A program made the translations under genes and the position numbers. The notes beneath the pieces are model-generated. The model did not search any database and had not been told where the DNA came from. It saw only the letters and a program-made list of their open reading frames with translations. This document shows positions 9,586 through 53,599 of a DNA stretch of 64,000 nt, in pieces (within the stretch, counting starts at the first letter, position 1; each line of letters starts with the position of its first letter). The DNA comes from Gnetum montanum. Its lineage: Eukaryota > Plantae > Gnetophyta. Location of the stretch: positions 147,051-211,050 of the forward strand of contig MNCI01003108.1 of the NCBI GenBank assembly GCA_015680685.1, in the 5' to 3' direction.

Positions 9586-9969
9586 TTGGATCTGAATCTT
9601 GAATTATACTTCTTTTTCCCCTATACCTTCTCAAGTCTGATTTTGATATCTTTCTATAAGTTGATGGAGTGGGGGAAAACCTAGGATGTTAATTTATATT
9701 TGTGATCTATCTATTCTCTGTTGTTGAACATATGAATTTCTTGATTAAATGATTAATGGTAAAATGGTTACAAGAGTTAAATTCAGGTGATCTTGTTTTG
9801 TGTGTTGCTAGAAATTATAAAAATATTATTATGTGATTGAACAAATATGAGATTATTAATTTATCTGCTTTTGTGGTCATTTCTTTGGTTTACAAATGTG
9901 TAAATGATCCTGATTAGATNGGTGGCTTTCTTTCTACAATAATCAAACTAACATTAACCTATNAATTTT

Positions 9970-12900
9970 CTTCTTTTAACTAGCTTTCTTGGGGGCTTCA
10001 AGTGTTAGCTCTTGCTCCCTATGAATGGGTATTACATGGCATCCCCTCATCATAGAACAAATTTGGGATCTTGGAATCTAAGAGTATTGAGGAATCGATG
10101 GAAGAAGCTACAAATGGCATAGCTAACAACAACCCCAAAGGTGGTTATGATGAGGCTTAGCCTGATCAAGGTGTTGATGGATAGGCCAATGGCCATCAAA
10201 AGCCTAGCATAGGAGTCTTGGACTAGGGATCTATGACCAATGTTGATGGCCCACAAGAGCAAAAGAACATGCACCAAGGTAGAACCCCTTTTCAAGTTTC
10301 AAAGACGAGTGCCTTGGATGAAGAGCTGCCACCTTTGGAAATGTGGGTTACACCAAATCAATGTATGGCCTCCACTTCTCTATCCTAGAGCTAGTAAAGA
10401 GTAGAATCTTGGACAACAATGGGGCCAACTTCAAGGTCTTGCCAGAAGTAAGGAATATAGTACGGCTATCACTGGAAAACATATGGATGAAGATGACAAA
10501 ACAAGATGTTAAAATGCACTTTCAAGGAACCCTTAAGGAGGTCTACAAGAAGCAGTCTCACAATAGGTCATGAAACTGATTACTTGGAGTTGCAGGGACT
10601 AAGGTACCACTATAAAAGATGCACTCTACATGAAATATTGATTCAAAGTCAATGTCATGTGGTATGTGTAGATGTCTTGTACACAATAGGAATTATTAAC
10701 ATGGAAAGGATGGCATGCTGTTTTTGTGGACGCAAGGGGTCACACAGGTGGATTAGCTATTCTCACAAGATTGAAAGCAACCCTAGTGTTCCAATCAAAA
10801 TGGAATCTTAGTATCTTTCTCCTAAATATTCAATTGTGGATTACTTAATTTTATGGCCTTTAGAGTGCCCAGGACAAGACCTAGGAGATTTCTTGTATGG
10901 TAGAGAGGGTTAGTAACCTTGCTAGATGGAAAATAGCTAGAGACTTCAACCAAAGGCTCTATACCTAGAAAAAGTCCCTCTAGGATCAAACTACCCCTTG
11001 GGTAGCACAAATTGCATGGAAATTTTAGCCTAGTTCAACATGACAAACCTAGAGATCCAAGGCTGCAAATTCACTTGCACTAATCATAGAAAGGGTAAGG
11101 ACAAAGTCCTATCTCAAATTGATAGTGTTTGAATAAGTTCACAACTTCCTCTTCAATTTCAGGAGGAACTAGTTGTGCTTGAGCACACGGTGTCTAACCA
11201 TCACCCTCTAGTCCTCTCTTTGGACCCAAAAGAGAAAAATCCATCATTGTCCTTGAAGTGTGAGCAAGTGTGGCTTGCAAAACATGGTTCCAAAGGTATG
11301 TTAGGGAAATCTAGAGCAATATTCAACTGTTTGGATTCTAAGGATTTCTTAAAATAAGGGCTCCAAGTGCTAAAGTAGCGAGTCAAATCCCATCCTAAAC
11401 AAAACATGTTTGCCTTCAAATTCTAGAAGGATTGGGCGGCTTTAGAACTCCAACACATCCAAAGTATCCAAGAACAAGGCTATGATTTAGAAGACAAAGA
11501 GAGGACAACCTTCCGCTAACTATAGTTATTATCTAGAGAGGAGAAAATGTGCTGGAAGGAGTGATCTAGAGTTCAATGGCTAAAAGAAGAGCATCAGAAT
11601 ATGAAGTTCTTTTTTGCAATGGCCAAAGCCAACTAGAATGCAAGGAAAATCCAATGTTTAGAAGTCAACAAAGAACTCACCTTTGATCAAGATAAGATTA
11701 CAAGAGCTATACAAAAACTCTAGGGGTGTATTTGGTCAAAAGGACCATGCTTCTTGGTGACTATTTCTATCACGTGAATTCTTTTTGACCATGATAACAC
11801 TCATCTCCTTGCCCCAATTACCAAATTTGAAATCACAGATGCCATTTTTACCAAGAACATTGGGAAAGCTCCTAGGCCTAACATGGGTACAATTGAATTC
11901 TCTATTTGATATTCTAAGTGACAATCCGGTAAATGTGTTTAATTTGAAGCTTACGAAGGGGCACATTAGGAGGGAACTAAACTGTTCCAGAATTGTCCTT
12001 ATCCCTAAAATTAGGTACCCCTGCCTCCCCTCCAACTACCAACGAATTAGGGTATGTAACACTCTCCTCCAAGTGTTCACTAAGATCCTTATCAAAAGAT
12101 TCAAGTCATTGATGCCTATGCTTGTGGGGCCACATCAAGTAGGCTTTGTTAAGGGGAGATTTGTTCAAAACCAAATCCTTCTTTTGCAAGAGCTTATTCA
12201 TTCCATTAAGCACAATCATTTCCTAGGTATGCTCCTCAAATCACACATTGCTAAAGCTTATGATTCTATTGAATGGCATGCTCTCCAACAAATTCTGCTC
12301 ACCAAAGGATTTGAAGCAAGGTTTGTTAAACTTTGTGTTCATATCCAAGAGTTGAGAGCTTTCTCATTTGATTTTGAAAAACAACTCAGGAGTTTCTCTT
12401 CCCCCCAATGTGGTCTTAGACAAGGAGATCCACTCCCACTTGCTTGTTCATTTTGGTTATGGATCTCACGAAGGACTACTATAGCGTCAAGGAGGTCCAT
12501 GGGCCCTTGGTCAAGGGAACAATATGCATTGCCAACCATTATGTTGATGACACCATCTTGATCTCTAAAGCCATCGTATCGAAGGCACTTACTATCAAGA
12601 GGGCACTAAATCGCATGGGTAGGAAGCTTAGATTGCACAACAATTGGTGGAAGTCACAGGATCACTTTGTTCATATAGATGCAACAATAATAGGCAGAGT
12701 GTGTAGAGCCCTCGGGTTGGGTAATGGTGTGACATAGGATACACAGTTAGGCCTCCCCATTTTTAACTGGAATAGACTTTGAAGCTAAAATAACTTCTTA
12801 TAGAAGCTGCAAAACAAAGTGGACCACAAGACTGCTAGTTTTCCCACCAGCAAAGGAAAAGTCGTGTTGGCCAATTCTATTTTAGCAGCTATGGCCAACT

Positions 12901-15238
12901 ACGTGGCATCCACCTGCAAACCTTCCAAGAATGTCATTTCTAAAGTCAATGCCATCATCAACAATTTCACTTAATTAGGGGGAAGAGGACACTCCAAATT
13001 GCATCTTGTGTCCTAGGAAGAAGTATCATAGCCAAGAAAGGAAAGGGGCTTAGGCGTGCCAAAATTATGATGAGCCAACAGAATTTCAGCCATGTACCAC
13101 CTAGATAAGGCACATGACCACAATGAGGAGGAAAAGAAAGTTAGATTGGCAATCGACGAAGTACCAAGATTTCCACTAGGTGGCCGATTTTATTAACTCC
13201 AAGGAGGCACACAACACGTTAAAAAATTTTACTACGAGTTGAGGTGTCGATGCTCTTACATCCATCTACTGTTTTTCTGATGAGTTTTTGCTTTTCAAAG
13301 TCCATGCGTGGAAAGAAATCGAGGTGGTGATGGGAATCACGCCGACGTTTGAACCGGATTGCACCGTGTTTCAGGAGGACGAGAAGCTCTGGCAGATGGT
13401 GACACAGTGCGGCTAGTGCAACCCCCTACAGCGGCTGGTCAGGGACCCAAATCTGGCTGACGACGCTTTCTTTGCTAACTGGCGCAATGACCGGACCTTT
13501 TTCCAAGGGTGCGAGGTTATCATCACAGAATCCTCAAGCGCCAGCTGTCTTGGGGCCCAGGCCGCCGGAGAGGTCATCCTACCGTCCACACATGGTCTGC
13601 AGCACACAGAATTGTTTTTCGAAGGGCCCGTGCCACGCACACAAAGCTGGCAGGTGCCCAGATCTTCTCTTCCCTGTCTCTAGGCCCAGGTGGCAAATCT
13701 AGTGGACAGATTTTTTGTCTAATCTGGCAACGTTTTCAAGCTCCATGGCATACACTTTGCGTTTCTGTGTTGCCTAAAATTGGGATGTCAAGTTAACCTT
13801 CCCTATTTTTTTCCTGGAGACCCTTCTACTTAAACGACGCGGCCACCNTAGATGGATGTAAGAGCATCGACACCTCAACTCGTAGTAAAATTTTTTAACG
13901 TGTTGTGTGCCTNCAACCCCCATGCTGACCCCCCTAGCCCTACAGCTTCATCCAATCGGGGGAACCGCTAGACCCTGCCGGCAACAACCTTCACACGAAA
14001 GCGGCAAACCCAACGGGAACGGCGCCCCCCTACCAACCTCGCCGGGCCAGAATCCCCCTCGTCGGAAACCTCCGACCACAGCACGAATTGGAACGAGGAG
14101 CTACGACAAGCCACACAAAGGGTTGCAGCCAAAGCGCGTGAGGCTGAACGGCGGGAGTGGGAGGCCAAATGGCACAAAGCCCTTGCGCAAGCCCAGGCCA
14201 ACTTGGAGGCCCAGTTTTACAAGCAGGAGCAGGAGAGGCTGAGGCAACAAGATCTCATGGCCAACGCCACCTGGGCCCGATTAGTGGATGAAATCCAGGC
14301 CCAAGTGTGGGAAGAACTGCTACAGGAGGATGCTGCCCAAAGGGAACATGAAGAGGCGGAGTAGGTGGAACAGGAACGCATACAGGAGGAAGAGGAGCAA
14401 CGACAGCGACAGCTCGATCAGGCACACGAGCACAGTGCTCGACAATGGCTTAGAGGGGGGCGGTGCCCGTACCTCATCCTAGGCATCAGTTGCGAGAGCT
14501 CCTGGGGGGAGCTCAGGCGCCACATCTGCCGAACCTCGGCACATTTTCATCCTAATGGGGGAACTTCGCTAGCTGACCGAAACAGGTGGGAGTCGGCCAT
14601 GCAGGGTATCCAGTAGGCCGCTAGTTTCATGGACACGAAGGACCACCGAAACACGTTGGACCTTCTTCATAAGCTGAAGCGCTCACACTGCGCCTGCCGA
14701 CGAACCCCTAGAGGTGTGTTGTTTCTAACCACGGACGGTGCTTGCCCTCCCCCCCCCACCCCGCCGTCGTNNNNNNNNNNNNNNNNNNNNNNNNNNNNNN
14801 NNNNNNNNNNNNNNNNNNNNNNNNNNNNNNNNNNNNNNNNNNNNNNNNNNNNNNNNNNNNNNNNNNNNNNNNNNNNNNNNNNNNNNNNNNNNNNNNNNNN
14901 NNNNNNNNNNNNNNNNNNNNNNNNNNNNNNNNNNNNNNNNNNNNNNNNNNNNNNNNNNNNNNNNNNNNNNNNNNNNNNNNNNNNNNNNAAAAAAAAAGTT
15001 CGTTAAGGGGGTGTCACTGTGATTTTTGGGTCTTCTAAGGGATCTGGGTCATGAGATAGGGCCCAATTGGCATTCAAATTTCGACTATTTTTTTGTAAGG
15101 GGAGCCTCCTCCCCCAATTTCATCCTCATGGTTGGGTTACCACTATGAAGGGGATTAATCCTCACCTTCCTTTTTGTTTGGTCTTGTACTCTGCACATTT
15201 TTGCAATATAATACATTCCCAATCCTTAAAAGAAAAAA
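9970..15238 (+). mobile_element. Old L1 copy E (internally deleted; copy C nested inside)
   Basis: Decayed ORF1 (CCFCGRKG), endonuclease and RT (11785-12737, GLRQGDPL, HYVDD), then a jump to a J-domain remnant at 13080-13255 (ISAMYHLDK). A 3'UTR-like segment with A-rich end follows at 15005-15238. The 5' boundary is approximate. Confidence 0.75.
13305..14998 (+). mobile_element. 5'-truncated L1 copy C (extra C-terminal module only)
   Basis: WKEIEVVMGITPTFEPDC... domain, coiled coil, RCPYLILGISCESSWGELRRHICRTSAHFHPNG, and poly(A) after the N gap. Candidate decayed TSD aaagtccat/aaagttcgt. Confidence 0.9.
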
Positions 15239-19989: not shown

Positions 19990-20655
19990 ACATGTACTTC
20001 ATCAATGCAAAATCCAATGAAATTAGACATAAAAATTGTCATGAATGTTCTGCAATATGTGAAAGATATCAATATAGGTCTACAACATATGGATAATCAA
20101 CCATTCAAGATGACAGCATTATTCTAATGCAAATCCAATGACAAGGCAATCACAAACTAGATTTTTAATTTAACTTGGTTTAGCAACATTAAACTAGTGC
20201 AGTGTGAAGCAGAAGACGGTGACCATCTGTTCAAAGGAAGCTGAATATGAGGGAGATGCTAAAAGATCTCCCATGATTGAAAAACTTTTTGAAGAAATTA
20301 GAATGAAGTTACCACAATTAATCATCTTGTATTGTGATAACACAATAGCCATCAAGATTACTCAGAATCTAGTATACAATGAAATAAGCAAGGATACTAA
20401 AGGTGATATGCATTATTTATACAAAGGTATGAAAGTATATTTATAACCTCAAATTACATAAACACCAAATTCCAACAGGAAGATGGTCTCACCAAGCCAC
20501 TACCTCAAGAAGACTTTGCTAGATTCCAAGATTCCCTAGAATTGGGAAAATCTTCTAACTAAAAAGTGAGGAGGAGTTGAGACAATCACGGAGCTGTAAC
20601 CATAAGTGAGAAGCAAATTATTAACGCAAAAGATGAAGTAACAATTGAATGATGA
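19990..20655 (+). mobile_element. Ty1/copia RNase H remnant with PPT and start of 3' LTR
   Basis: KQKTVTICSKEAEY...LYCDNTIAIKI and DGLTKPL motifs; purine tract GTGAGGAGGAG at about 20566-20576. Confidence 0.7.
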
Positions 20656-20897
20656 GACGGCAGGAGCAACCATAGCAGGCGCAACCACAGCAGGAGCAAC
20701 AACGGTAGGAGAAGGAGCGACAGGCGGCACAACAGCCGTCAATGCGGGTATGGCAGATGCAACCGCTGCCAGCGCGGGGGGACGGGCACGGTTGCTGCTG
20801 CTGCTGCGGCGGGTGCGGCTGCAGCTGATGCGACAACCGGAGCAGCGGCAACCGAAGGGGGAGCATCTAGGACCATTGCGGCCTCCTCCCGTACAGA

Positions 20898-22169
20898 ATG
20901 CACCCTGCGCCTGCACATTCACCACCCCCTGCCGAGGGCGTTCGCACAATGGAACATAGCCTCATCGGTCGCTTCATCTCCCGGGGGAGCCGCCCCCGAC
21001 TGGACCTGATTCATCGCTGGACGAAGGAGCAATGGAAACTTGAGGACGTCGCTGTCCGGAGCCTCTCAGAGGACCTACTCCTTTTTATCCTCCCCTCCCT
21101 ACAGGACCGCGACTCCGTCCTTCTCGGTGGACCCTGGTTCTATGGGGCCCGGGGTCTCGCTTTGACCCCCTGGCGCCCAGGGGCCCATAGAGAGACCGAC
21201 CTGTTCACCCGTGCCCCGGTATGGATCCGAGTGGCCGGCATCCCATGGGAGTTTTGGAACCTTGAGTTCCTAAAGGAGGTGGCGGGTCACTTTGGAGAAT
21301 TCATCGCCTTCGACCGGGTTACGAGGTCAATGGAACGGATGGGCTTTTCCAGATTCTGCGTCTGGCGCAACCTGTCGGAGACCGACCTCGTTCGGGAGGT
21401 CGTGTTGGAACTCCCCGGGGGGGAGGAACCCCTCCAGGTTACCTTTGAAAACCTGGACCCTGGAGCTCCCCGGTTGCATGGCTCGGCCACCCGAGCGGAC
21501 CGGTTGACCGGCTACGGTTGCTGTGGCAAGCCCGAGCATCACGAGGCGGACTGTAGATTTCGAAGATCGAGACCGGCTAACCCGGCTCGCCAGTTGTTCG
21601 AGGGGGGCAACTGGNNNNNNNNNNNNNNNNNNNNNNNNNNNNNNNNNNNNNNNNNNNNNNNNNNNNNNNNNNNNNNNNNNNNNNNNNNNNNNNNNNNNNN
21701 NNNNNNNNNNNNNNNNNNNNNNNNNNNNNNNNNNNNNNNNNNNNNNNNNNNNNNNNNNNNNNNNNNNNNNNNNNNNNNNNNNNNNNNNNNNNNNNNNNNN
21801 NNNNNNNNNNNNNACCCCCTCTCTCCCACCTCCACACACACATCCCCAGCCAGGCCATCCCATCACTCACAAATATCAGACACTACCCACCCCAAACACC
21901 CACAGGAACCAGAACCAGAACCAGAACTCCCCCCCTTGGGGGAATGGGTTAACATTGTCCAGGGAAGCACTTGCACCAGACAACGCAAAGCGCAGCAGTC
22001 CCCAACCGAGGAGGCCGGCTGTACCCTGGTGGTACGAGCTGGGGAGGGACACCCCGGCCAACCGACCGAGCAATGGTCCCGAAGTAGACAGGCCCAACGG
22101 AACATTGATTTGGGCTAACAACAGACTTTACGGGAGGTCTACCAACGCCGCACATCTGGTTGTACATGA
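20898..22169 (+). pseudogene. L1 ORF1 (DUF4283-type RRM plus CCHC-like knuckle)
   Basis: SLIGRF...GGPWFYG...PVWIRVAGIPWEFW, CCGKPEHHEADC. Premature TAA at 22116; natural TGA at 22167-22169. The true start is probably upstream or truncated. Confidence 0.9.
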
Positions 22170-25100
22170 AGATTCTCAACTGGAACTGCAGGGGTCAGGG
22201 TACCCCCTATAAACGAAATACCCTGCGCCGTATTGTCAGAGAGGAGAATTGCGATCTGGTTTGCCTACAAGAAACCAAACTGCAAGCGGACGAATCTAGC
22301 CACCTCCAGTGGGTGGGTTGGACCACCCACTTGCAACCCTACCAGGGTAGAGCCGACGGTCTTGCCATCCTCGCACAGCCCACCACCACTCTGGTAGACG
22401 CCTCCCCTTGGGCCATTACAATCCACATCCCAGCCCACGGATTTTGGCTAACCAACTTCTATGGGGCGCAAGAATGGGAGTCACAGCTGCGTGAGCTGCA
22501 CCGCGTGGCCCTGCTGGTGCCCAACCGCTGCTCCTGGTTGGTGGTCGGTGACTTCAACCAACGTCTACACCCCTGGGAGAAATCTGGGGAGGCTGCCCCC
22601 CCACCTCCAGGCACGCAGGATTTCATGGATTGCCTAAATAGATTTTCCCTGGTTGATCTACCCATTGCGAACTGCAGGTTCACCTGGAGCAACCGGCGGA
22701 AAGGGGTGCACCGTGTCCTCTCCCGCATTGACCGAGTCTGTGTCAGTTCCGACCTCCTTCTCCGTTCCGCCATCACTGTGACGGGACAAGAACGGGCCGC
22801 CTCTGATCACCGCTCGTTGGTCGTCTCCATCGGCCTGCCTAAACCTCGGGCCCCGCACCCCTTTCAGTTCGAGACCGCCTGGTTCTCCAAACTGTGGCTG
22901 CGCCCCCTAGTGGAGGATATCTGGGCTGATTACCAGCCTAATCGGATGGACCCTCGGAGCTTCCTCAAAGATGCTCTCCTTCGGCTCAAGTGGGCCATCC
23001 GAGCCCTCCCAGTGGGGGAAAAATTCTCCTTTCGGGCTGGCCACAAGAGTGTTCGGGAGCAGCTCAGCCGCGTCCAGGCACAACAAGAGCAGGGAGCGGA
23101 CCTGTACTCGGAGGAGATGCATCTTCTTCGTCAACTCCAGAATCTTAACCAAGAGGAGGAAATGTATTGGCGGCAGCGATCTCGGGTCAGATGGCTCCGT
23201 GATGGAGATAGACAAACAAAATTCTTTTTCGCCATGGCCAAAACACGTGGCGAAACTCAGATCCGTGGCCTCCGCACGCAGACCGGGGAGTTGGTCGATG
23301 ACCCGCAGGGGATCGCCAATGAGCTCTCACACTACTGGGGGGAAGTTTGGACCAAGCGACCTACTCAACCCATCTCAGTCCATGTGGAGAAGGTGCTCAA
23401 TGCTACGGACAATCGACGTCTACTGGCCCCCTTCTCCTGGCCAGAATTGACTAACACCATCAACAACATGCCGGGAGGCAAAGCGCCTGGGCCAGATGGC
23501 TGGTCGCTGGAATTCTTCAAAGTTTTCCTGGACATTGTGGGACCCAACCTTCTGGATGCTTTCAACATTATGCTGGCCAAACGACAAGTGCAGCGCGAAC
23601 TCAACTGCTCTTGAATCGTTTGCATTCCAAAACAGGTGGACGCCCGCCGCCCGGAACACTTTCGTCCCATTGGAGTTTGCAATGTCCTCATTAGAATATT
23701 CTCCAAACTCCTGGTCAACCGCCTAGGACCCCTCTTACCCAAGTTGGTAGGAAGCAATCAGGCTGGTTTCGTTCAAGGTAGGGCCCTCCAAGATCAGGTT
23801 CTTCTCATGCAAGAGGTCCTCCATTCCCTTCGTACCACAAGCTTTCCAGGTATGTGTCTCAAGCTGGACATAGCCAAGGCATACGACACGCTTAGTTGGG
23901 ATGCCTTACAAGACATCATGCATAAAAAAGGTTTTGATCGTGGTTTTATCCAATTATGTATGCATATCCAGTCCTCTGCGGGTTTCTCCTTCGACGTGGG
24001 GGGCCGACTGTGGGGCTTCTCTTCACCTAGTAGGGGTCTGCGACAAGGCGACCCACTCTCTCCCTTGCTTTTCATCATTGCCATGGATCTCATGCAATAT
24101 TATTGCAGCACATCAGGCGTGGAGGGCTTGGATATTGTTGGGGTGGCATGTCGTGTTGAACACTATGCTGACGACACCATGTTACTTAGNNNNNNNNNNN
24201 NNNNNNNNNNNNNNNNNNNNNNNNNNNNNNNNNNNNNNNNNNNNNNNNNNNNNNNNNNNNNNNNNNNNNNNNNNNNNNNNNNNNNNNNNNNNNNNNNNNN
24301 NNNNNNNNNNNNNNNNNNNNNNNNNNNNNNNNNNNNNNNNNNNNNNNNNNNNNNNNNNNNNNNNNNNNNNNNNNNNNNNNNNNNNNNNNNNNNNNNNNNN
24401 NNNNNNNNNNNNNNNNNNNNNNNNNNNNNNNNNNNNNNNNNNNNNNNNNNNNNNNNNNNNNNNNNNNNNNNNNNNNNNNNNNNNNNNNNNNNNNNNNNNN
24501 NNNNNNNNNNNNNNNNNNNNNNNNNNNNNNNNNNNNNNNNNNNNNNNNNNNNNNNNNNNNNNNNNNNNNNNNNNNNNNNNNNNNNNNNNNNNNGGCCCGC
24601 ATCATTCAACGAAAATACACACCCTGGCAAATCGGCCCATGCCCCTCGCAGCCCTGGCAGATAATCTGCCGGCATGAACAGGAAATGATGCACTTGGGCT
24701 GGACCCACCTCGAGCCGCGCGCCCTGTTGACACAAAAATACCCATCGGAGGACGGCTGCCAGGAGATCTGGCGCGGGCAGCTCCCCGAAAAAATCAAACT
24801 GTTCCTCTGGCTCATTAAGTCTGCCGTGCTCCCTGTACGCACTGTACTACAGCAGCGCGGCATCATGCACGATGACACGTGCCCCCGATGTGAAAACGGC
24901 TCAGAAACCATCACGCACTTCATTCATGGGTGCCCTTGCATGCTTGCCATCGGNNNNNNNNNNNNNNCCCCCCCCCCCCCCGAGATGGTTTAATGGTGAC
25001 TCCTGGGAGTCCCTGCTTTTATGGCACGCCTGGAAGGCGCGTAATCACACGGTTTTTCTACAAGCTAGAACTCCCCCTCCCCAGCAGATCATCGTGCAGA

Positions 25101-26505
25101 CCAGGAGGGTGTGGAGAGAGATAACGGGTGCCATGGGAACTACACCGACGTTCGAGCCTGACTGCAGCAAGTACCGCGCCGACGAGGAGCTATGGCGGCT
25201 GGTTATCCGCTGCGGCTGGGCTGACCTACTACAACGGCTGGTCGGTGACCCTGACCTTGCTGACGCCCCATTTTTTACTAACTGGCAAACTAACAGTACC
25301 TACTTCCAAGGGCGCGTGATTCGCCTCACTGAATCTGCCATTGCCAGTTGTTTGGGGGTCCCGGCCGCTGGGGAAATCGTCCTGCCAACCAACCGTGGCC
25401 TCCAGGACACCGTGGCCTTTTTCGAGGGATCGGCCCCAAGAACACAGAGCCGCCAGATCCCCCGATCTTCTCTCCCACGCCTCTGGGCCCGGGCCGCTGA
25501 CTTGGTGGACCGCTCTTTCGTCCAATCAGGCAACGTGTCAAAACTCCAGGGATTGCACTTCACTTTCCTGCGATGCTTGAAATATGGTGTCCAAATTAAC
25601 TTGCCTCGGTTTTTTCTTGAGACCCTCCGTCTTAAGCGACAAGGTCGCCATTCGGGGCTGATTTTGGCGTTATGGAGGGGGGCGGGGGACGGGGGGCGCC
25701 AGGTCCGTCCTCTGCCCCCCCTGGGGGGAGCATCGTTGCGACTCCCCCCCTGACATCCCCGCTCCCCCCAGCCCGACCACTCAACCTCCACGGATGGTTT
25801 TCGGCCTCACCTGGGGGCACCGATCCCATCGCAACTTGCCCCCCAAGCCCGACCCTCACCCCGCCCCCCAAACTGGGCGGCGGACTTACATCAGGCCGAG
25901 CAGGCGGCGGCTGCTACTGCTTGGGAGGCTGAGCGGCGGGAGTGGGAGGCAAAATGGACCGAGGCCCTGGCAAAGTCACAGGCAGAACACGAGGCCCAGC
26001 TCCGCGAACGAGAACAAGAGCTAACCCGACAACACGCGATCATGATGGAGGCCTCTCGTGCCCAACTCATTGATGAACTCCGAGACCAAATCAGAGAGGA
26101 GCTGCGCCAGGAGGAGGTGGCCCGTCAAGCCCAAGAGGCGGCGGCCCAGGAAGAGCAGAAACGCCTACAGGAAGAAGAAGAGCAACGGCAAAGGCAGTTG
26201 GACCGAGCGCACGAGCACAGTGCCCGGCAGTGGCTTAGGGGGGGTGCTGCCCATATAGCCTCTTGGGCATTAGTTGTGAGAGCTCCTGGGGAGACCTCCG
26301 GCGACACATCAGACGCACATCAGCAAAATACCATCAGGATGCGGGCGACTCATCGGCTGACCGGAGCAGGAGAGAGGCTGCTATGCAGGGCATCCAACAA
26401 GCGGCGAACTTCATGGACACCGAAGAGCATCGCAACACCATGGACTTGCTGCATGAGCTTGAACGGCCTCAGTGTGCCTGTTGCCATCTGCCCACTCGCC
26501 CCTAA
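22166..26505 (+). pseudogene. L1 ORF2: APE endonuclease - RT - zf-RVT - Transposase_32-like - coiled coil - J-domain
   Basis: MKILNWNCRG, VCLQETK, GDFN, SDH, KAPGPDG, GLRQGDPLSP, YADD, CPRC...H...C, then the extra module. Disrupted by TGA at 23612, N gaps and slips in C/G homopolymers. Confidence 0.88.
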
Positions 26506-26786
26506 GACCCCTCATCCCGCCCGCTGGGGGTGCACCCCACCCCCCCTGTTTTTGAGTTATGAGGTTTTGAGATCTGAGCCTTTCATGCTCTGAATTCTGC
26601 AATTTTGAGGGGTGTCGAGGTTTCCACCTCCTACCCCTCCCAGTGGGCCATCCCTGATGTCCCATTGCTTTGTATACTTGTGTACCATACTTCATAGTAA
26701 TACAAACCCGAACATTTATCAAAAAAAAAACAATTGAATGATGAAGTAACCATAGAATTGAATGAAGTAACAATTGAATGATGAAG

Positions 26787-27847
26787 AGGGGGGGTGCGGG
26801 CAAACCCCGAGGGGGGAGGGGGCAAGCACCGTCCATGGTCCGAAATAACACCCCCCCTTTGGGGTTCGTCGGCAGTCGACGGCAAGCGCAATGTGGGTGC
26901 TCCAGCTCATGAAGAAGGTCCAACATGTTTCAGTGGTCCTCCGTGTCCATGAAACTAGCGGCTTGCTAGATACCCTGCTCCTCTTCCTCCTGTATGCACT
27001 CCTGTTCCGCCCGCTCCGCCTCTTCACATTCCCTTTGAGCAACATCCTCCTACAGCAGTTCTTCCCGCACTTGGGCCCGGATTTCATCCACTAACCGGGC
27101 TCGGGTGGCGTCGGCCATGAGATCTTGCTGCCTCACCCTTTCCTGCTCCCGCTCGTAAAACTAGGCCTCCAAGTTGGCCTAGGCTTGCGCAAGGGCTTCG
27201 TGCCATTTGGCCTCCCACTCCCGCCGTTCAACCTCACGTGCTTCGGCTACAGCCCTCTTTGTGGCCTACTGTAGCTCCTCATTCCAATTCGTGTTGTGGC
27301 CAAAGGTTTCCGACGGGGGGGATTCCGGCCTGACGAGGCTGGTAGGGGGGCACCGTTCCCATTGGGTTTGCCGCTTCCGTGTGAAGGTTGTTGCCAGCAA
27401 GGTCCAGCGGTTCCCCCAGTTGGACGAAGCCGTAGGGCCAGGGGGCTCAACAAGGGGCTGGCAGGGGGGCACACTAAGACGGGTGCTGCCCCCCCTCTGC
27501 CCCCCGCCACAAGGCTAAGATTAACCCCGAATGGCAGCTGCGTCGTTTAAGTAGAAGGGTCTCCAGGAAAAAATGGAGAAGGTTAACCTAGCATCCCAAT
27601 TTCAGGCAACGCAAAAACGCAAAGTGTATGCCCTGGAGCTTGGAAACGTTGCCAGATTGGACAAAAAATCTGTCCACCAGATCTACTGCCCGGGCCCAGA
27701 GCCGGAGAAGAGAAGATCTGGGCACCTGCCAACTTTGTGTGCGTGGCACGGGCCCTTCGAAAAACAATTCCGCATGCTACAGACCACGTGTGGATGGTAG
27801 GATGACCTCTCCGGCAGCTTGGGCCCCAAGACAACTGGCGATTGATG
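26787..27847 (-). mobile_element. L1 3' fragment copy F
   Basis: SSIASCLGAQAAGEVILPST...HSGLILALW, coiled coil, then J-domain C-terminus only (internal deletion). Confidence 0.9.
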
Positions 27848-28386
27848 ATAGTTGCATTATGAAATATGGAAAGTCTCTTTGAAGTAATTTCCTTCAATGC
27901 TAATTAAGTGTTGTAAGTTCTACTATAGTTTAAATTTTTCTTTTATAAAAGTAATTTATTATTACTTTATTTTTCTTTAATGTATAGACCCATTTATTTA
28001 CTAGAATTTATATTCTTTTATTTAGGATAGAAAAAAAATGCCCCCAAGAGAATATATATATTTATATCAAAGGTATTTGTATATGAGTTGCACGTCATTT
28101 AGGCAGTAGAGAAAGGACCTAAATCTATGTGTGTGTGTTTGATCATGTATGTTTGTTTGCTTTCCATAAAATAAACTCACATAAATTATGATCAAAGGTC
28201 CTTTGAACCCTAGGATAAGCAATTTCACCTCATCTCATAAGCAGTAATTATGAGTATAATGCATTTCTTTGGTGTATCATCTATGAAGCATGTAATATTT
28301 TTAGGAAAACCTAAATAAATTTTAACAATGTATTCACCTCCATACATTGAATAGATAGATTGCATTGTTTATTTCCATCCATCATG

Positions 28387-34250: not shown

Positions 34251-36480
34251 TTTTTTTTTTTTTTTTTTTTTGGAACAGTCAAGGGGATTTTTATATTAAC
34301 AAATAAACATAATATACAAAGGAACCAGGGCATGTAATAGAGAATATCAACCCTGGATCACATGCAAGTCCCTAGACATGGACCACAAAAATTGCCTGAG
34401 GGGCCCACAAACACCAAAAACCTATAACAATACCCACAAGCAAAACCACAAAAGCCTAGACGATCCATTACATATGTCAAGAATCCACAATAGTACTCAC
34501 TTTTACGTCCTATTGCTTCATTGATTCTTTGTAGCTTTGCAAGTCAATAACACCTCTTCTCCTAGCTCAGATTAACCAACTTATCAAGATGAAGCAATAC
34601 TGCCCTATGCCTCACCATGGCATTGATCCTAGACAAAGATGACTCTTTGATTACCCCCAACTCCACATATAGATATCAATGGTCTTTGAATCATTATTGA
34701 CTATGGCATCAAGCCCCTTTAGTAGTCTTCTTTCCATCTTCTGCCTTTCTGCCTCCTCTATCTACTTCCTCTGTTCCGCCTCATGGGATCTAACCTTGCT
34801 TCCTACTAGGCTCTAGCAAACTCCAGCTCTGACCAATATCAATCCTCCTCCTAATGCTGCTGGAAAGCCTCTTTTCATTGTTCCTCCTCCTCATGTTGTT
34901 TGTGCCTCTCCTCCTCCCTAGTAGCTTCTTGCTTGAGCTTCTCCCTAAGATGCACCCTACGCTGTTGCATCTTAATTAGTCATCTCTTCTATGCCTCAAA
35001 TTTTAGGTATACCTCAAGATCTTCAATATCCCTGAGGATTTCTGTTCTGCGAACTCCTTTGCCTGTTCTCTAATGCGGGTTTCAAACTCATGCTTTTCTT
35101 TCTCCATGTGTTCATTTATCTCAACTTCAATCCTCGAATAAAGGGAGTCTTCAATTGCAGCAATATCAGCTTCTGCATCCAGCACCCGTTGCTCTTCACC
35201 TAGAACTTGTCCTTGCATAGGCTAGGAAACATTATCTGACTACAAGGAAGCCAACACTTCTTGCTCAAACACGAAGCTATTTGCTAGAATAGGAGAGGTG
35301 GAATCAATCTAGAATGCTATGATGACTACCATTTTTGAAGATACACAAGGAAGATTATAGGAATTTTGACTACCTAAGATACTTAAGAAGGGAAAAATGA
35401 ATGCCATACAACTTAGAAAAACTGCTTAATTAGACGAAAAATATGTCAAGAACCTCTGTTGTGCGCTACTAAAGAGGCTACAATGAGGTCCTAGAAACCT
35501 AATCGCTTATGGTAGTTTGGATACCATCAAGAAAAAAGTCTACAACACTCCACAATCCCCCGGTGCCAGGAAAAATCACCTCCCCCTTAGTCAGCAGACA
35601 TATATATTATCCACTATGTTCCTCCATGTGCTGAATCTAAACATTTCTAAATGTAGTTGAATCTCCTCTCCATTGTGAGAAGAATTGTGTCACAATGAAA
35701 TCTCTTTCTCCACCCAATAATAGAAGGAAAGCATCCCATCCAACCCCAACAATGAATGGCTAGAACTTTGGTCCTACTGAAAAGGCGAGATGTCTTATTC
35801 AAAAGTGGGAGTAGCCACCATGGCATTGCAGATTTCCTTCCACTACTTAAATGCTTGCTTAGCCAACAACCACAGTGATGGCACAAGTTGGGATCTGAAA
35901 ATGCTCCAATTCCTAGCTTTCCAAATAAACTAGGTGACAACCACATGGGGATTATCTCCCATTAGCTTTGACAGGTTATGAATATTCATGGCCATCCAGA
36001 CCTGCCAACTATCAGCACAAATGAATATAAGATGAGCAATCATTTCTGTAGTGTTGTCCCAACACAGGACACACATCCCATCAATCCACATCCCCTGAAG
36101 ACATAAAAAGAACCTTGTAGAAATGGCATGTTGCTTCATAAACCAAGAGAACATTTTTCACATTTTTGAGAGTTGACCCTTTAACATTATGTTCCAATTG
36201 GATGCTTTCCCATACTTTGCAATCAAGAGGTTGCTTGTGCTGTAGTTCAATTGTACTTGAAGCCCATTCATGATAGCTTTAAATCTACAAATGACCTTGC
36301 AAAGTATAAAGTTCCTTGGTTGGCAATTTCAAGGCTAGTATTTTCTAGAGATGAGATGGACCTAGGCAGCATCCTTCTGGACAGCAATCCTCTATCTCAA
36401 CTTAAACTAACTACCAAAATGCAATCCTCAAATCTTAGTATGACAAAACCCTCACATTGTCTAGGCCTCACCACATCTCA
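34251..36480 (-). mobile_element. Diverged L1 copy G (5'-truncated)
   Basis: Poly(T) 34251-34271; zf-RVT (CVLCWDNTTEMIAHLIFIC), GEVIFP.../LYGIHF domain, coiled coil (35003-35218) and J-domain LYVELGVIKESSLSRINAMVRHRAVLLHLDK...AKLQRINEA. Confidence 0.85.
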
Positions 36481-36596: not shown

Positions 36597-39500
36597 ATGC
36601 AACCAAGAGCAAGCTGCAACACCTACTGCAGGGGTTTAGATCCTGGAAGATGGCCAAGTGCGGGGCAAGGGCTCTCTCAGCTGCAGATGTACTGGGAGGA
36701 TATATGGCGATGGCGGCACACTGAGCCCGTCTTAGTTCCGATGCCTTGCATCTTAACCTTTGCCGAGAACCAACAACTATTACAACCATTTTTGCGGGCA
36801 AAACTCCATACAGCCATGAAAGCCATGCCAGTGAACAAAGCCTTGGGTCTGGATGGGTGGCTGATAGAATTCTTTTGGGAGTTTGAGGAGCTCTTGGGAG
36901 CGAACCTGTTGGACTCGTTCAATAGCATGCTCACCTGGCAACAGGTATGTAAGGAGATTAACTACTCCCGAGTAGTCCTTTCGAAAGTCCCGAACCCAAT
37001 GTCTCTTGGGCACTTCAAGCCCATTGGCATGTGCAACACCCTCCTTAGAATTTCTTCATAGATGCTGGTTAACCGGGTGGCCCCCCTCATGCCTAGGCTG
37101 GTCAGAGAGCATCAGGCCGGGTTTGTCAAAGGCCAAATCCTGCAGGACCAAGTCCTACTACCGTAGGAGATTCTACATTTGCTCCGAATTGCTCGGTTCC
37201 CTAAACTATGTGTTAAGCTGGATATTACTAAGGTGTATGATTCGGTCAGTTGGGCTACGCTCTGCATGGTCATGTTGGCGAAGGGGTTCAATGCCAAATT
37301 CGTCAACATATGCATCCAAATCCAACAAGACAGCAAATACTCCCTAGACATTGACAGGCAGCTATGGGGCTTCCAAGGCACTGGGCGGGGCCTACAGCAA
37401 GGAGATCCGTTATCACCTCTGTTATTCCTTTTGGTCATGGACCTTCTCAAGTCCTACTGTGTGGAGGAAGGGATGCAAGGGTTGAATATCGACAAGGTGC
37501 ACTGCTTGGCCACCGACTTCGCTGATGATACTCTGGTGGTCACCCGGGTGGCGGTGCCCCAAGTAGAGGCCTTGTTGAGGGCATTAGATCGATTGTGGAA
37601 GGAGGTGGGCCTCACAATCAACACAGCCAAGTCTGCCATTTACATGGTGCAAATTGCAGCCACGGTGGAAGCAAAACTTATACAAACACTAGGTATCTTG
37701 CCTAGGCACACTGAGGACAAGTATCTGGGCATCCCCATTTTTCATTGGCAACATAAGAAGGCTTGGCAGGGGCTATTGGAACAGCTCCAAACAAAGACTT
37801 CCCATTGGCTCAATCGATTCCTCTCATGCAAGGGGAAGATGATACTAGCATCTACCGTCCTAATGGCCATAGCCCAGTTCGCTGCCTCCATGGCCAGGTC
37901 GCCGAAGGGAGTGATACAGAAAGTTGATGGCATCATCCATGAGTTCGTATGGTCAAGGGGGGAAAGGGGACAAACGTGTGCACTTGGTATCATGGAACAT
38001 CACAGCATGGCCTAAGTCGACAAGTGGAGTTGGCCTCTTAACGCTTAATGATGAGATCGCGCTAGGGTTGCAACGGCTCCTTTGCAGAGTCTTGAATCAA
38101 GATAGAACCCAAACATTGTGGGTGCAACTACTTAACAACAAATATCGACGATGGGAGGCAAATGCTGGCGACTCCCACCTTTGGCAAAACTTGTGCCATC
38201 ACGTTCACTAGGTTGAGTCACTGGGCTTCTTTGATCAGCATCCACAGGAAATCATTAAGCATCGATACCTATCTGCTCCTGCTTGAGGGAAACTTTGGAA
38301 CGGCCACCTTCCAGAAAAAGTCAAGGCGTTTGGGTGGCTAATTATGCATCAAGCACTCTCAGTGTGTGCCACGTTACGCAAATGTGGGCTACAGGTGGAG
38401 CCCACTTGTCCCTTATGTCGTACAGACACTGAAATGCTCCACCACCTTATATATCGCTGCCCTTTCACAAGGGTTGTTTGACATGCTACCTGTCTTAAGG
38501 CATTTGAATGCCACGGGGACTCTCCTACCCTAGCAACTTTGTGGGTGTTGTGGAAGCACCAGAACTCGTAGATATTCAGGGGCACAGAGCTATTGGCACC
38601 GACAACGATGGCCAGAGGCATTCAACGGCTTTGGAACGAGGCTTCTATGGCTATGGGACAAAGACTCCTCTTCGAGCCCTTAGTCTCTAAATTCAAGGAC
38701 CACGCTGAGTTATGGCCTTTGGTTCAAAGAATGGGTTGGGATGAAATGCTTCACCGCCTAGAAGGGGAACCAGGATTACCCACGGCTCAATTCTACGACA
38801 ATTGGCAGGGCACTGAAACTACTTTCTAGGGCTGACGAATCACTATTTCGATGCCTATGCTAGCGGAAGTGTTGGGTATACAAGCTGAGGGAGAGGTCAT
38901 TGTGCCGGTTGTCCATGCGCAATTGGACATGGCTGAATTCTTCCAAGGGGACATCCCTAGGATGGCCAGCGGGCATATTTGGAGACTGGCGCTTTCAGGA
39001 GTATGGAGGGAAGTTGCCGTTTTAGTTGAACGGTATTTCATCCAATCTAGTTACCCCCACAAATTGGTGGGTGTTCACTTCATGTTTCTCAAACACGAGG
39101 CACAGGACACCCATTAACGTCCCTAGATTTTTCTAGGATTCTTTGCAGTGCTAGCGTCCTGGGAGACACCCAGGGGTTATCATGGCACTTTGGCGTGTGG
39201 GACCGCCAATCCTGTCATTAGAACCCATGATTGTCTATTCCAAACAACGGGGTAAGCAACAGGTAGCCTGGATGGGATCCCAAGAGAGGGAACGCATGGT
39301 GAGATTGGCAACTACACGCACGAGAGAGCCATAGAGCCAAGAGCTCAATACAAAGGGGAGGCACTTGCAGCGTGGGCGTAGATGGGACATGACAGCAAAA
39401 TGTAGTAGAGCGGCTGAACAAGCTAGACAAGAAGAAGGGAGTGGTGGCAACAATGATGGGCCAATATGCAAAGAGAAGTGTAGCAAGAGACCACACGAAT

Positions 39501-51922: not shown

Positions 51923-52728
51923 TTTTTCTTCTTCTTCTTTTCTTTTCTTTGGGGGGAAATTCAGGTGTATATTAATCAACAACAAATATGTACAGCAGTT
52001 AGATATCCCCAAAAAGGAGGGGAGAAGTCTCCCCTCACCCCCACAAAAACCACCCCCTTTTGCAATTAGCCCCAATGTAAAACTGAGTGGCAGGTCCACC
52101 CCCTAGGACTCCAACTTGGTAACCCATCAACGTCACAAATTCAGAAAACAGCCAGAACAACCAAAGTATAAACAAATCCGCAATAGCAGCCCAACCAACC
52201 CCCACCCCACCCCAGAACACAAACTAAATATGGAATGGCAGCCTTGTACAGCAACAACAGCTCCATTCGTGGCTATGAACTGCATCTAGCACCACTCTAT
52301 GGTGCTCAATGTCAATGAAAGCCACCACTTGCTGGAACTCTTTGAAAGCAGCTGCTTTACTTGCACATTTCACAACATTTCCCTCCCCATCCAGGTGAAG
52401 CTCCTTGCCCTAGCGCGGATGTGCCTTCTCAATGCTCCCCAGGGCACATTGCGCCCAATGTTCATAATGACATATGGGCAGCGCCCCTCCCAAAGCCATG
52501 TTCAAGCATTGCTTTTGTGATTCCAATCAATTTGCTACTGTATGAGTGCCTCCTCCCGTGCCTCCTCCTCCCTGTGCTCCTGTTCCTCCCTCTCCCTCTC
52601 TTCTTGGAGTTGGGCCTCCTCCTGTAGCTTGTCCCGGATCTTTTGCCTGAGCTCATCTTCCAAAGCATGCAGGGCTGCTGCCTCTACCAAATCGCAGCAA
52701 ATCCTCTCTACCTTGGCCGCCTCATTTT
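51923..52728 (-). mobile_element. Diverged L1 3' fragment copy J (coiled coil plus J-domain)
   Basis: T-rich tail 51923-51950; EGRCPYVIMNIGRNVPWGALRRHIRARA..LHLDGEG...AAAFKEFQQVVAFIDIEHHRVVLD; candidate TSD TTTGTGTGTG(TG)nTTT. Confidence 0.85.
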
Positions 52729-53599
52729 TGTGTGTGTTTCTCCATTGTGAAATGAAATATTTATCATTTATGGAATAATCATAAATCTTTTAGATATCAT
52801 TAATGGTTTCAACATTTTAGTGTTGACCCACTTTACAACTTTGGTTTAAAGCCCCCACCTGGAGTTAATGGTCACAAGAGGGTCATAAGATGGGACAGCA
52901 GTGGTTGTGGATGGAAGCAACTTTTTCAACGCACATGCCTGTTTCATATTCCAGCAAGTTTGAGCCCCACCCATGAGAAATTGTCAATTAAACAATTTGG
53001 ATAGGACTCTAGGACTCTTACAATGAAAATTTCTTTAGGTGTCTGTTCAACTAAGACATGTAACACAAGAAAAAATGTATCATAGGTACTGATGTGCTCA
53101 GTGCCATCCCTGTTGACCAAAGGCCATGACGTATCGGGAGAGAGGCACCTGCCACATTTTCTGTTCACATCTTAATTGTTGCAGGCTTCATGTGGGATCT
53201 CTTTCTTTTTTGCTATTTCCACAAAGTTCTTCTGAACTCATTTTTTCATTCTAGCCTCCTTGCCAGCTCCATCGTTGCTGCAACATGCAACTCTCTAAGC
53301 ACCATTACCACCTGCACAATCACCTTATCAACTTTGCTGCCACCTGTGGCATTCTTGTCATTCCCTCACTCTCATCATTGGCACCTACAATCATCACCTG
53401 TGTTGTTGCCACCCACGCCTGCAAAAAAACAGTCCCTATTCTGATACATTATGACGTGACTGGTAAAACCCCCATTGCCCAAAATGCATGACCTGTGGAG
53501 AGGGAGGCACCTGCCACATTTTTTGTTCTCATCTTCTTTGTTGCAGGCTTCATGTGGAATCTCTTTCTTTTTGCTATTTCCACAACACTCTTCCAAAAT

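Follow-up and report, generated by a model that had tools for sequence, protein, structure and literature searches.

An abundant L1-clade LINE family with a Transposase_32-like domain and a probable J-domain coding region behind its reverse transcriptase

A full-length L1 LINE and its relatives in the window

The stretch of DNA analysed here (the window, 64 kb) contains a full-length L1 LINE, copy B, which ends in a poly(A) tail and is flanked by a 14-nt target-site duplication, caattgaatgatga, in agreement with the duplication-bounded element described in the initial annotation (Table 1). The tandem 15-mers of its 5′ UTR score 69 in Tandem Repeats Finder. ORF1 encodes a DUF4283 domain (Pfam E 2.5e-25) and a CCHC knuckle seen in the translation, and ORF2 encodes an endonuclease (EN; Exo_endo_phos, E 9.1e-16) and a reverse transcriptase (RT; RVT_1, E 2.2e-23). 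With its APE-type endonuclease, reverse transcriptase, zf-RVT, DUF4283/CCHC ORF1, poly(A), target-site duplication and 5′-truncated copies, the element is a plant-type L1-clade LINE. Behind zf-RVT follow a further domain (X), a linker, a charged helical region (CC, for which ‘coiled coil’ denotes composition and heptad-like spacing only) and a J-domain (J), all of which, together with the 3′ UTR, are enclosed by the target-site duplication.

Three gaps interrupt copy B (21615–21813, 24190–24593 and 24954–24967); they are spanned by no contig or read, and only the loose ends of relatives enter them. With copy A as the yardstick, the 404-N gap is ~170 nt too short and the 14-N gap would be ~10 nt, which would place zf-RVT and X of copy B in one frame. 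X is joined in frame to the C terminus of ORF2, behind zf-RVT: copy A passes from one domain into the other through an open stretch (3022–3717), as previously noted, and both lie in one frame in a full but distant LINE on an independent metagenome contig (L001).

Table 1. Features of copy B and of the other module-bearing copies (coordinates of the window)
Feature	Position	Strand	Remarks
Copy A: EN-RT-zfRVT-X-CC-J	167–4755	+	Module 3211–4755; 61-N gap within the linker
Copy C: X-linker-CC-J	13243–14709	+	HPN; sole window copy with Pro kept in the HPD motif
Copy B, entire element	20656–26730	+	Full-length L1 LINE
Target-site duplication, 5′ copy	20642–20655	+	Same 14 nt again at 26731–26744
5′ UTR of copy B	20656–20897	+	Starts with a 15-mer in tandem, 3.5 copies, 20660–20711
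ORF1 (DUF4283 and CCHC knuckle)	20898–22118	+	Broken by assembly gap 21615–21813
ORF2, endonuclease and reverse transcriptase	22160–24189	+	Enters the 404-N gap; one stop, 23612–23614
zf-RVT of ORF2	24685–24953	+	Pfam E 5e-15; 14-N gap 24954–24967 next
Post-zf-RVT spacer	24968–25141	+	Conserved Met-Gly at its end
Domain X (Transposase_32-like; VANC/PMD-like fold by model)	25142–25681	+	180 aa; AF2 model, PF20167, dN/dS
Variable linker, G/C-rich, proline-rich	25682–25879	+	Likely ORF2 stop TGA 25751–25753; C-run at 25863
Charged α-helical region CC (coiled coil or single helix)	25880–26235	+	Conserved in A, C, I and K
J-domain and stop codon	26239–26505	+	Domain 26239–26502, stop 26503–26505; reads HQD
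3′ UTR and poly(A) tail of copy B	26506–26730	+	215-nt 3′ UTR; A10 tail 26721–26730
Target-site duplication, 3′ copy	26731–26744	+	Matches 20642–20655
Copy K: X-linker-CC and J end	26861–27893	-	CC in X+1 frame
Copy G: X, charged helix, J-domain	34484–35929	-	Diverged subfamily, strongly deaminated; HLDK
Copy H: RT-zfRVT-X	36621–39196	+	Diverged subfamily; X at 38512–39196
Copy I: zfRVT-X-linker-CC-J	40316–42171	-	Module 41850–40316; private 19-nt linker deletion
Copy M52: CC-J only	52227–52789	-	Diverged, 5′-truncated; HLD

Parts of the module recur in seven further copies in the window (A, C, K, I, G, H and M52; blastn and tblastn were among the searches), so the recurrence first reported stands, with seven other copies in place of eight. 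Copies M52 and C retain the 3′ part only, and a search for a J-domain behind X of copy H detected none. All copies read are decayed, and none among them is intact. The GC background is 31–33%, which fits a deaminated gnetophyte genome.

Outside the window, the tail of L001 forms a 638-codon frame that has 9 stops, where the off frames have 36 and 73, and that ends in a J-domain. The identity of X across the subfamilies that keep the module is only 28–39%. The module is, as judged from these comparisons, old, being present both in G and M52, which belong to diverged subfamilies, and in L001, from outside the window. The family is also very abundant, with thousands of DNA contigs 92–99% alike to copy B. 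The RNA evidence for it is weak: 321 poly(A) RNA reads are spread over the whole element on both strands, and 37% of them continue into unlike sequence.

Domain X and selection on the module

The AF2 model of X from copy B has a pLDDT of 92.6. A wide VIA-align search of the PDB with this model returned a sole match, the VANC21–DNA complex (9lnk_A; Z 6.2, r.m.s.d. 4.3, 169 of 180 residues aligned), the next structural match having a Z of 2.0 and values below 8 being such as may mean a mere common arrangement. Foldseek found no PDB match to the model, and a profile of the X family run against PDB sequences gave one chance hit only, with 9lnk absent even at E 10. The model suggests that X has the DUF1985/PMD-type fold of VANC21, on a match that is moderate and without sequence support.

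At the sequence level, PF20167 matches 4 of 26 members of the X family (best E 1.5e-5), and X of copy B scores 14.4 bits (E 0.037) against it, below the gathering cut-off of 45. Transposase_32 clusters account for 25 of the 30 named look-alikes of X in the ESM Atlas. The extra domain had been described as Transposase_32-like, a label that these matches sustain: X appears to be a distant relative of Transposase_32 rather than a member. Only 23 relatives were matched among 1.84 billion proteins, and these are gymnosperm proteins and LINE fragments. Relatives of X come from Ginkgo, Taxus and Welwitschia, and there are free-standing X-like proteins in Ginkgo and Taxus; the Met-Gly that precedes X aligns with the start of the free-standing gymnosperm homologues. 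A protein search with limits on length and on shared words, under which a blank says little, returned nothing for the X ORF or for the CC region.

X, CC and J are selected coding sequence. All three evolve like EN and RT, with nonsynonymous-to-synonymous ratios of ~0.1–0.4 in the true frame as opposed to ~1–2 in the off frames, which excludes the value near 1 that the initial annotation had named as speaking against its proposal. For X, dN/dS is 0.08–0.17, or 0.08–0.18 with the spacer in front of it included; for CC, pN/pS is 0.27–0.37 in frame and ~1–2 out of frame; and for J, dN is 0.16–0.23 with synonymous sites saturated. The benchmarks from copy B versus copy A are pN/pS of 0.27 for EN and 0.17 for RT. 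When the linker is compared with other subfamilies, dN and dS are both ~1.

This selection bears on whether the module could be a passenger, that is, a host gene fragment that 3′ transduction or template switching brought in on a single occasion and that was then copied without function for the element. L1 elements do transduce flanking DNA, and the Ginkgo and Taxus proteins, with Met-Gly at the position of their start codon, point to gene capture. As an account of the module we nevertheless consider this extremely improbable, given purifying selection as strong as that on EN and RT across lineages with saturated synonymous sites, the retention of the module in L001 and in subfamilies so dissimilar in X, and its position upstream of the 3′ UTR and poly(A) of the element rather than behind them.

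The reading frame behind domain X

The initial annotation proposed a single ORF2 of roughly 1,450 aa that runs about 1.4 kb past zf-RVT in copy B. The module does lie inside the element, as stated there; the unbroken frame was not borne out. In copy B, X and CC share a frame with only the TGA at 25751–25753 between them, and J falls out of the CC frame because 1 nt near 26240 is deleted in B specifically. In B, I, K, C and the distant L001, a stop closes the X frame ~30 codons behind X. A conserved stop, which the initial annotation had named as speaking against its proposal, thus divides CC-J from ORF2 and leaves X within it. The passage from X into CC in one frame in copy I, originally offered as direct evidence of fusion, is the product of a private 19-nt deletion. 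The corresponding claim for CC and J in copy C holds (14365–14613), and the two likewise share a frame in A (4466–4798) and I (40505–40708).

The distance from an anchor in X to an anchor in CC is 310 in K, 303 + 19 = 322 in ancestral I, and 288 or 289 in B and its relatives. Subject to the lengths of G/C homopolymer runs, which are error-prone, these distances place the CC-J frame at X+1 in K, in ancestral I and in those B relatives that have an extra C after 25863, a base found in 25–63% of the depth from relatives of copy B. The linker contains the overlap zone of the two frames, and its last 38 codons are constrained in the CC frame alone (pN/pS 0.47–0.51, p = 0.001 and 0.005), as opposed to ~1 in the X frame. 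Copies G and H were left out of this frame analysis owing to excessive decay, copy A has its 61-N gap at the critical linker position, and the frames of L001 cannot decide the layout because of a frameshift inside its ORF2.

These observations weigh on the alternative of one continuous ORF2, EN-RT-zfRVT-X-CC-J, in which the stops and offsets behind X would be decay or assembly errors. It would accommodate the common frame of X and CC in B and I, the lack of a conserved ATG in the linker that could open the CC-J frame and the unreliability of the run lengths, and the codon under the stop in C, I and K could have arisen from a sense codon through deamination. We nonetheless consider it unlikely: the shared frame of I is owed to its own deletion, K, ancestral I and the extra C all give X+1, a stop ~30 codons behind X recurs in five sources including L001, and past it the X frame is unconstrained whereas the CC frame is constrained.

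Given the stop after X, the +1 frame in K, ancestral I and the B relatives, and the deletion in I, CC-J is probably not in frame with ORF2 and is likely to be an overlapping ORF3 or a frameshift product. In the subfamily of copy B, stop read-through or plain fusion is possible. No conserved shift site or reinitiation signal was found, the stop contexts being CCC-TGA in B versus TGT-TGA in C, I and K. Two further readings were rejected. The stop behind X in A does not correspond to the one in K: the TAG of A belongs to the CC frame, and K has GAG at that place. A start of CC-J at the single conserved Met in mid-CC is contradicted by equal constraint on the half upstream of it.

The J-domain and comparison with known systems

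The last domain had been named a DnaJ J-domain, and three lines of comparison agree on this. The best piece in the window matches Pfam DnaJ (PF00226) over model positions 2–63 with E 6.8e-5 and 23.3 bits, below the gathering threshold of 27.8, and the second half of the L001 domain scores 22.1 bits; all ten matches of a PDB profile search are J-domains; and nearly all of the top ~45 rows of a Foldseek search of the PDB with the AF2 model are J-domains, at probabilities of up to 0.98, TM ~0.5 and E from 0.06. The model (pLDDT 75) has four helices, at 5–9, 17–33, 39–59 and 62–75. This supports the assignment of the C-terminal domain as a J-domain with a predicted four-helix fold.

The HPD site is HQD in B, HPN in C, HLD in I, G and M52 and YLD in L001, and that of copy A is frameshifted within CAT C-G GAT; HPD is intact in none of the six window copies read. 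The departures are of single nucleotides (CAT CAG GAT, CAT CCT AAT and CAT CTT GAT), and from them HPD can be composed. Leu in place of Pro in three copies fits C-to-T decay, and an HPD-less pseudo-J would fit too.

Such a J fold without Hsp70 activation, with no functional HPD and serving only as a helical interaction module, would also suit the YLD of L001, the Pfam score under the cut-off and the best Foldseek row, the ‘pseudo DnaJ’ J-domain 2cug. We hold it to be quite unlikely, since each copy is one nucleotide from CAT CCN GAT, mostly by C-to-T, the dominant decay here; B relatives differ from B mainly by A>G and T>C; and His-Pro is kept in C, as are His and Asp in B, I, G and M52.

The reading that we favour, and consider probable, makes this an L1-clade LINE family of great age and abundance with a permanent two-part accessory module, in which X is fused to ORF2 and a selected linker-CC-J region is likely to be read in the +1 frame. 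From the frames, ORF2 would end ~30 codons past X, and linker-CC-J would be read in the overlapping +1 frame, either as a separate ORF3 through termination–reinitiation or within an ORF2-CC-J transframe protein through +1 frameshifting or G/C homopolymer slippage. By extension from established knowledge of the domain families, the J-domain would dock on host Hsp70 and trigger its ATPase beside the LINE proteins or RNP, and the recruited Hsp70 could help with folding, assembly or remodelling. CC might oligomerize or tether the protein, and X may bind DNA or chromatin and so serve in choosing targets or in a VANC-like relief of silencing. The roles that the initial annotation had proposed, as possibilities, are RT folding, RNP assembly and stress-coupled transposition.

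A bolder proposal, which we regard as rather unlikely, is that the LINE carries its own host-manipulation kit: a VANC-like, RT-borne DNA-binding domain that would recognize the repeats of the element itself or its targets and would counter silencing, and a J co-chaperone, made by recoding (+1 frameshift or homopolymer slippage) on a fraction of ORF2 protein only, that would recruit Hsp70 to the retrotransposition complex. If true, a retrotransposon would for the first time be seen to encode an Hsp70 co-chaperone, and a non-LTR element to carry a domain of the anti-silencing type.

LINEs are thought to hold a small, stable protein repertoire; they depend on host chaperones and are restrained by DNA methylation. 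With a J-encoding family, natural proteins could be used to test directly how far retrotransposition depends on chaperones. A VANC/PMD-like RT domain would widen the range of modules for anti-silencing or DNA targeting beyond DNA transposons and Gypsy, to non-LTR elements and to a gymnosperm-like genome on which methylation and deamination have left a strong mark. The family is very abundant, a success in which the module may have had a share, and the overlapping-frame layout raises a testable question of recoding or reinitiation for plant LINEs. Our literature searches for LINEs with a J-domain (DnaJ) or with a PMD or VANC-type domain returned nothing relevant and no paper describing the family, in line with the initial annotation, to which no description of such a LINE was known; the Welwitschia genome paper makes no mention of such a LINE.

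The family resembles other plant L1-clade LINEs in the domain order of ORF1 and ORF2, target-site duplication, poly(A) and 5′ truncation. Smyshlyaev and colleagues are said to have described, in 2013, plant L1 ORF2s that gained an archaeal-type RNase H at the C-terminal end, the same site of addition; here there is no RNase H, and a Transposase_32/VANC-like domain and a CC-J coding region are found instead. Ty1 and Ty3 use a +1 frameshift, and human L1 ORF2 is translated without a dedicated AUG. As in these, the two frames overlap where the upstream ORF ends, and the downstream one lacks a conserved ATG; unlike in these, the stop contexts noted above hold no conserved shift site. A survey of L1 domains across 503 genomes leaves DnaJ unmentioned (PMC5203782).

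VANC21, a DUF1985 protein with which the Arabidopsis DNA transposon VANDAL21 counters silencing in a sequence-specific manner, is a transposon-encoded accessory protein and provides the only solved structure to match the X model. It is predicted to dimerize via a coiled-coil helix (PMC13547354), which resembles the succession of X and the helical region. VANC reportedly binds its own transposons in their noncoding regions (PMC10398659), beside which the tandem 15-mers in the 5′ UTR of copy B may be set. VANC21 differs in being free-standing and in belonging to a DNA transposon, whereas X is fused to RT in a LINE of a gymnosperm-like genome and has no detectable sequence similarity to it; VANC has also been described as dicot-specific (PMC13547354). 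Weak but repeated PF20167 matches and the ESM Atlas look-alikes likewise link X to the PMD, to Transposase_32/ATHILA ORF1 of Ty3/Gypsy elements and to host MAIN/MAIL1, although X lies below the Pfam threshold (14 bits versus 45). PMD-C and DUF1985 are reported to share structural features (preprint 10.1101/2024.09.27.615353; PMC13547354), and the relevant passage of the preprint places PMD in retrotransposons, host genes and DNA transposons, with LINEs unmentioned (10.1101/2024.09.27.615353).

The insect R1 and TRAS elements are a precedent in that a LINE can take up a foreign domain for good, past the usual domains of ORF2: theirs is a viral SF1 helicase domain at the ORF2 C terminus (PMC4686597, PMC5563155). 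They differ in the kind of domain, which was captured from RNA viruses, in their insect host and in having no separate frame downstream. Polyomavirus T antigens offer the parallel of a mobile parasite that brings its own J-domain to use host Hsp70, and one such structure, 1faf, is at rank 45 among the fold matches. Theirs is N-terminal in a regulatory protein of a DNA virus, whereas the predicted J-domain described here is C-terminal, follows a charged helix and belongs to a non-LTR retrotransposon.

Copy B and its 3′ module

Copy B, the reference among the LINE copies described here, is a complete non-LTR retrotransposon, flanked by a duplicated 14-nt sequence, caattgaatgatga, which abuts its first base and stands again directly after its A10 tail. 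Its ORF1 encodes DUF4283 (E = 2.5e-25) and a CCHC knuckle, and ORF2 encodes an APE-type endonuclease (EN; 9.1e-16), a reverse transcriptase domain (RT; RVT_1, 2.2e-23) and zf-RVT (5e-15). The element extends about 1.5 kb past zf-RVT, through a module consisting of a domain that we call X, a linker, a charged helical region (CC) and a J-like domain (J), and closes with a stop codon, a 215-nt 3′ UTR and the tail. The 5′ UTR starts with 3.5 tandem 15-mers (unit GCAGGAGCAACCACA).

Features of copy B, with the codon-by-codon comparison of copy B with copies A, C, I and K
Feature	Position	True frame	Shifted frames
Copy B	20656-26730		
Tandem 15-mers	20660-20711		
EN		pN/pS 0.27	about 1-2
RT		pN/pS 0.17	about 1-2
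zf-RVT		pN/pS 0.54	about 1-2
Domain X, 180 aa	25142-25681	dN/dS 0.08-0.18	about 1-2
X-frame stop (TGA)	25751-25753		
Linker, G/C- and proline-rich	between X and CC		
CC, charged helical region	about 25880-26235		
CC, upstream half		pN/pS 0.31-0.37	about 1-2
CC, downstream half		pN/pS 0.27-0.32	about 1-2
J-like domain	26239-26502	dN 0.16-0.23, synonymous sites saturated	about 1-2
Stop codon	26503-26505		

Just ahead of copy B is the C-terminal end of a copia-type pol remnant. The insertion site is a short tandem array of 2.9 copies of a 21-nt unit, which holds the duplicated target, and the minus-strand copy K directly adjoins copy B with its 3′ end (flanking positions 20204-20640 and 26729-26786). 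The relatives of copy B in the sequence runs depart from it chiefly by A>G and T>C (about 90 of 180 places per run; 20800-26730), which indicates that copy B derives by C-to-T/G-to-A deamination from a master richer in G/C; this state fits the 31-33% GC background of the window. Each of three DNA runs contains more than 3,300 contigs that match copy B at 92% identity or above; several hundred B-matching contigs reach at least 99%, and summed word depths run from hundreds to thousands. These figures mark the B subfamily as highly repeated. From oligo-dT RNA, one run yielded 321 reads across the whole element, including the tail; they fall on both strands, and many continue into dissimilar sequence. 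The reads place the family in RNA and say no more than that.

Parts of the module occur at seven other places in the window (blastn, tblastn and profile searches). Copies A, C, K and I share 60-72% protein identity with copy B, and copies G, H and M52 share 28-39% in X or J. M52 and C are 5′-truncated and keep the 3′ part, the pattern expected of LINEs. Further L1 copies of other subfamilies (7399-9588 and 10570-12563) are 30-64% identical to copy B in EN and RT, and within the window no X or J is detectable behind them. A distant full LINE occupies positions 339-7640 of L001 and is identical in L002, two JGI metagenome contigs of plant-like DNA (99.99% alike, 33.7% GC); its RT is 50% identical to that of copy B. 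Its tail frame contains 9 stops in 638 codons, compared with 36 and 73 in the other frames, and ends with a J-domain, 3′ UTR and A-run. Ahead of the J-domain, this tail ORF is far longer than in the window family, acidic and lysine-rich; about 6780-6900 may hold another, weak J-like stretch.

The in-frame fusion of zf-RVT with X, proposed in the initial annotation, is directly proved by a gap-free ORF of copy A (3022-3717) and by L001, in which both share one frame, and not by copy B, whose assembly gaps (21615-21813, 24190-24593 and 24954-24967) are bridged by no read or contig. The 404-N gap (24190-24593) is probably larger than estimated, because the same anchors lie 669 nt apart in copy A and 498 nt apart in copy B, about 170 nt short. 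By comparison with copy A, the 14-N gap would be about 10 nt, and zf-RVT and X of copy B would then share a frame.

Selection and reading frames across the module

In the codon-by-codon comparison, for which the two shifted frames served as controls, the true-frame and off-frame ratios indicate that the module was under purifying selection during subfamily divergence, at a strength like that on the core enzymes. The selection check named in the initial annotation thus came out in favour of a constrained module: neither X (dN/dS 0.08-0.18) nor CC (pN/pS 0.27-0.37) is near 1. That the module is a mere passenger is ruled out by purifying selection equal to that on the core enzymes. Between copies B (22160-26505) and A (167-4755), synonymous differences amount to 0.72-0.88 per site, at or beyond saturation, and non-synonymous differences to 0.13-0.35. 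Judged from their sequences, the A and B subfamilies are very old lineages, with selection kept on both.

A single ORF2 of about 1,450 aa that ends X-CC-J had been proposed at the outset. Five observations of frame and constraint speak against this plain fusion, which we now regard as unlikely. Counted from the start of SGLIL, the motif at the C-terminal end of X, the X frame runs for 27-33 codons before a stop in copies B, I, K and C and in L001; in the four window copies the stop is TGA. Between the X-end and CC anchors lie 310 nt in K (1 mod 3). Copy I has 303 nt, but a 19-nt deletion is private to it in the comparison with A, C and K, which puts its ancestor at 322 nt, also 1 mod 3. Copy B has 288 nt; an extra C after 25863, found in 25-63% of the depth of its near-identical relatives, gives 289 nt, 1 mod 3. 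The X+1 frame is closed by a TGA within the conserved Ser-Gly-Leu-Ile codons and is open onward into CC in K. Over the last 38 linker codons, comparison of A with K and C detects constraint in the CC frame only (pN/pS 0.47 and 0.51; Fisher p = 0.001 and 0.005), the X-continuing frame giving 0.97-1.04.

The most economical layout, and in our estimation the probable one, is that ORF2 (EN-RT-zf-RVT-X) stops and that linker-CC-J lies in an overlapping +1 frame, as read from decayed copies and homopolymer lengths. Linker-CC-J could then be translated as an ORF3 after reinitiation, or as a transframe extension through +1 frameshifting or slippage on a G/C run. Layouts other than the +1 frame and the plain fusion would be less probable again. 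No conserved ATG opening the CC-J frame was found among the copies compared. Translation from a single conserved Met in the middle of CC is ruled out, because the half of CC upstream of it is equally constrained.

Identity of domains X and J

Searched against 1.84 billion proteins, the X profile returned only 23 matches: free-standing Ginkgo and Taxus proteins beginning Met-Gly-Gly, a Welwitschia transcript fragment and short LINE-like fragments. X opens with a conserved Met-Gly that, when aligned, matches the first residues of the free-standing proteins, and this suggests that a whole coding sequence was captured. The free-standing gymnosperm proteins (P0002-P0004, P0006, P0012 and P0014 from Ginkgo; P0003 and P0016, Taxus-like) are 270-600 aa long, with the Met-Gly-Gly start and X-like domain followed by a C-terminal helical region, and at E 0.01 they match none of the Pfam families. 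Two X-like domains are present in P0002, and the P0013 gene model joins an X-like N terminus to a PPR-DYW protein.

Pfam Transposase_32 was matched by 4 of 26 X-family members (best E = 1.5e-5), and Transposase_32 clusters account for 25 of the 30 named look-alikes of X in the ESM Atlas. With the AF2 model of X (pLDDT 92.6, pTM 0.87), Foldseek gave no match in the PDB; in an exhaustive VIA search the sole chain above Z 2 was 9lnk_A, VANC21 with target DNA (Z 6.2, 169 of 180 residues aligned). A search of PDB sequences with the X-family profile found no sequence support for this pairing, and we take the likeness, a moderate match of a predicted structure, as a lead. VANC proteins are described as sequence-specific anti-silencing factors of VANDAL transposons (PMC5735166, PMC10398659); the fold of their DUF1985 domain is reported to be common with the plant mobile domain (10.1101/2024.09.27.615353; PMC13547354), and dimerization of VANC21 through a coiled coil is a prediction (PMC13547354).

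The terminal J-domain of the initial annotation is borne out by profile and fold. In copy B, the only open copy, J matches Pfam DnaJ across the whole model (E = 6.8e-5), and its 23.3 bits fall under the 27.8-bit cut-off. All ten PDB sequences matched by a profile of the window J pieces are J-domains; the AF2 model is a helical hairpin bundle (pLDDT 75), and J-domains fill nearly all of the best 45 or so Foldseek rows. The J-domain of L001 is more canonical, its second half being scored by Pfam at E = 1.7e-4. HPD is intact in none of the copies read (window copies and L001): the codons at this site are CAT CAG GAT in B, CAT CCT AAT in C, CAT CTT GAT in I and G, CAC CTG GAT in M52 and TAC TTG GAC in L001, and A has a 1-nt deletion. 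The window copies are each one step off HPD, mostly through C-to-T, the dominant decay change here.

Possible roles and precedents

Through their HPD motif, J-domains trigger ATP hydrolysis by the Hsp70 on which they dock. By analogy, a J-domain translated from LINE RNA would recruit Hsp70 to nascent ORF proteins or to the RNP, and the helical region could oligomerize or tether. If VANC-like, X could act by binding DNA, either to select targets or to relieve silencing. The 15-mer array at the start of the copy B 5′ UTR is a candidate X site; its interest lies in the reported binding of VANC proteins to noncoding parts of the transposons that encode them (PMC10398659).

No paper that attributes to a LINE either a J-domain or a domain of PMD/VANC/Transposase_32 type was found in a literature search whose scope lay outside subscription journals and Repbase; earlier annotation of a LINE with a J-domain or an X-type domain is possible. 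Plant L1s that gained RNase H are among the nearest precedents. The other is provided by LINEs of insects, in which a helicase of viral origin was added behind ORF2 (PMC4686597, PMC5563155).
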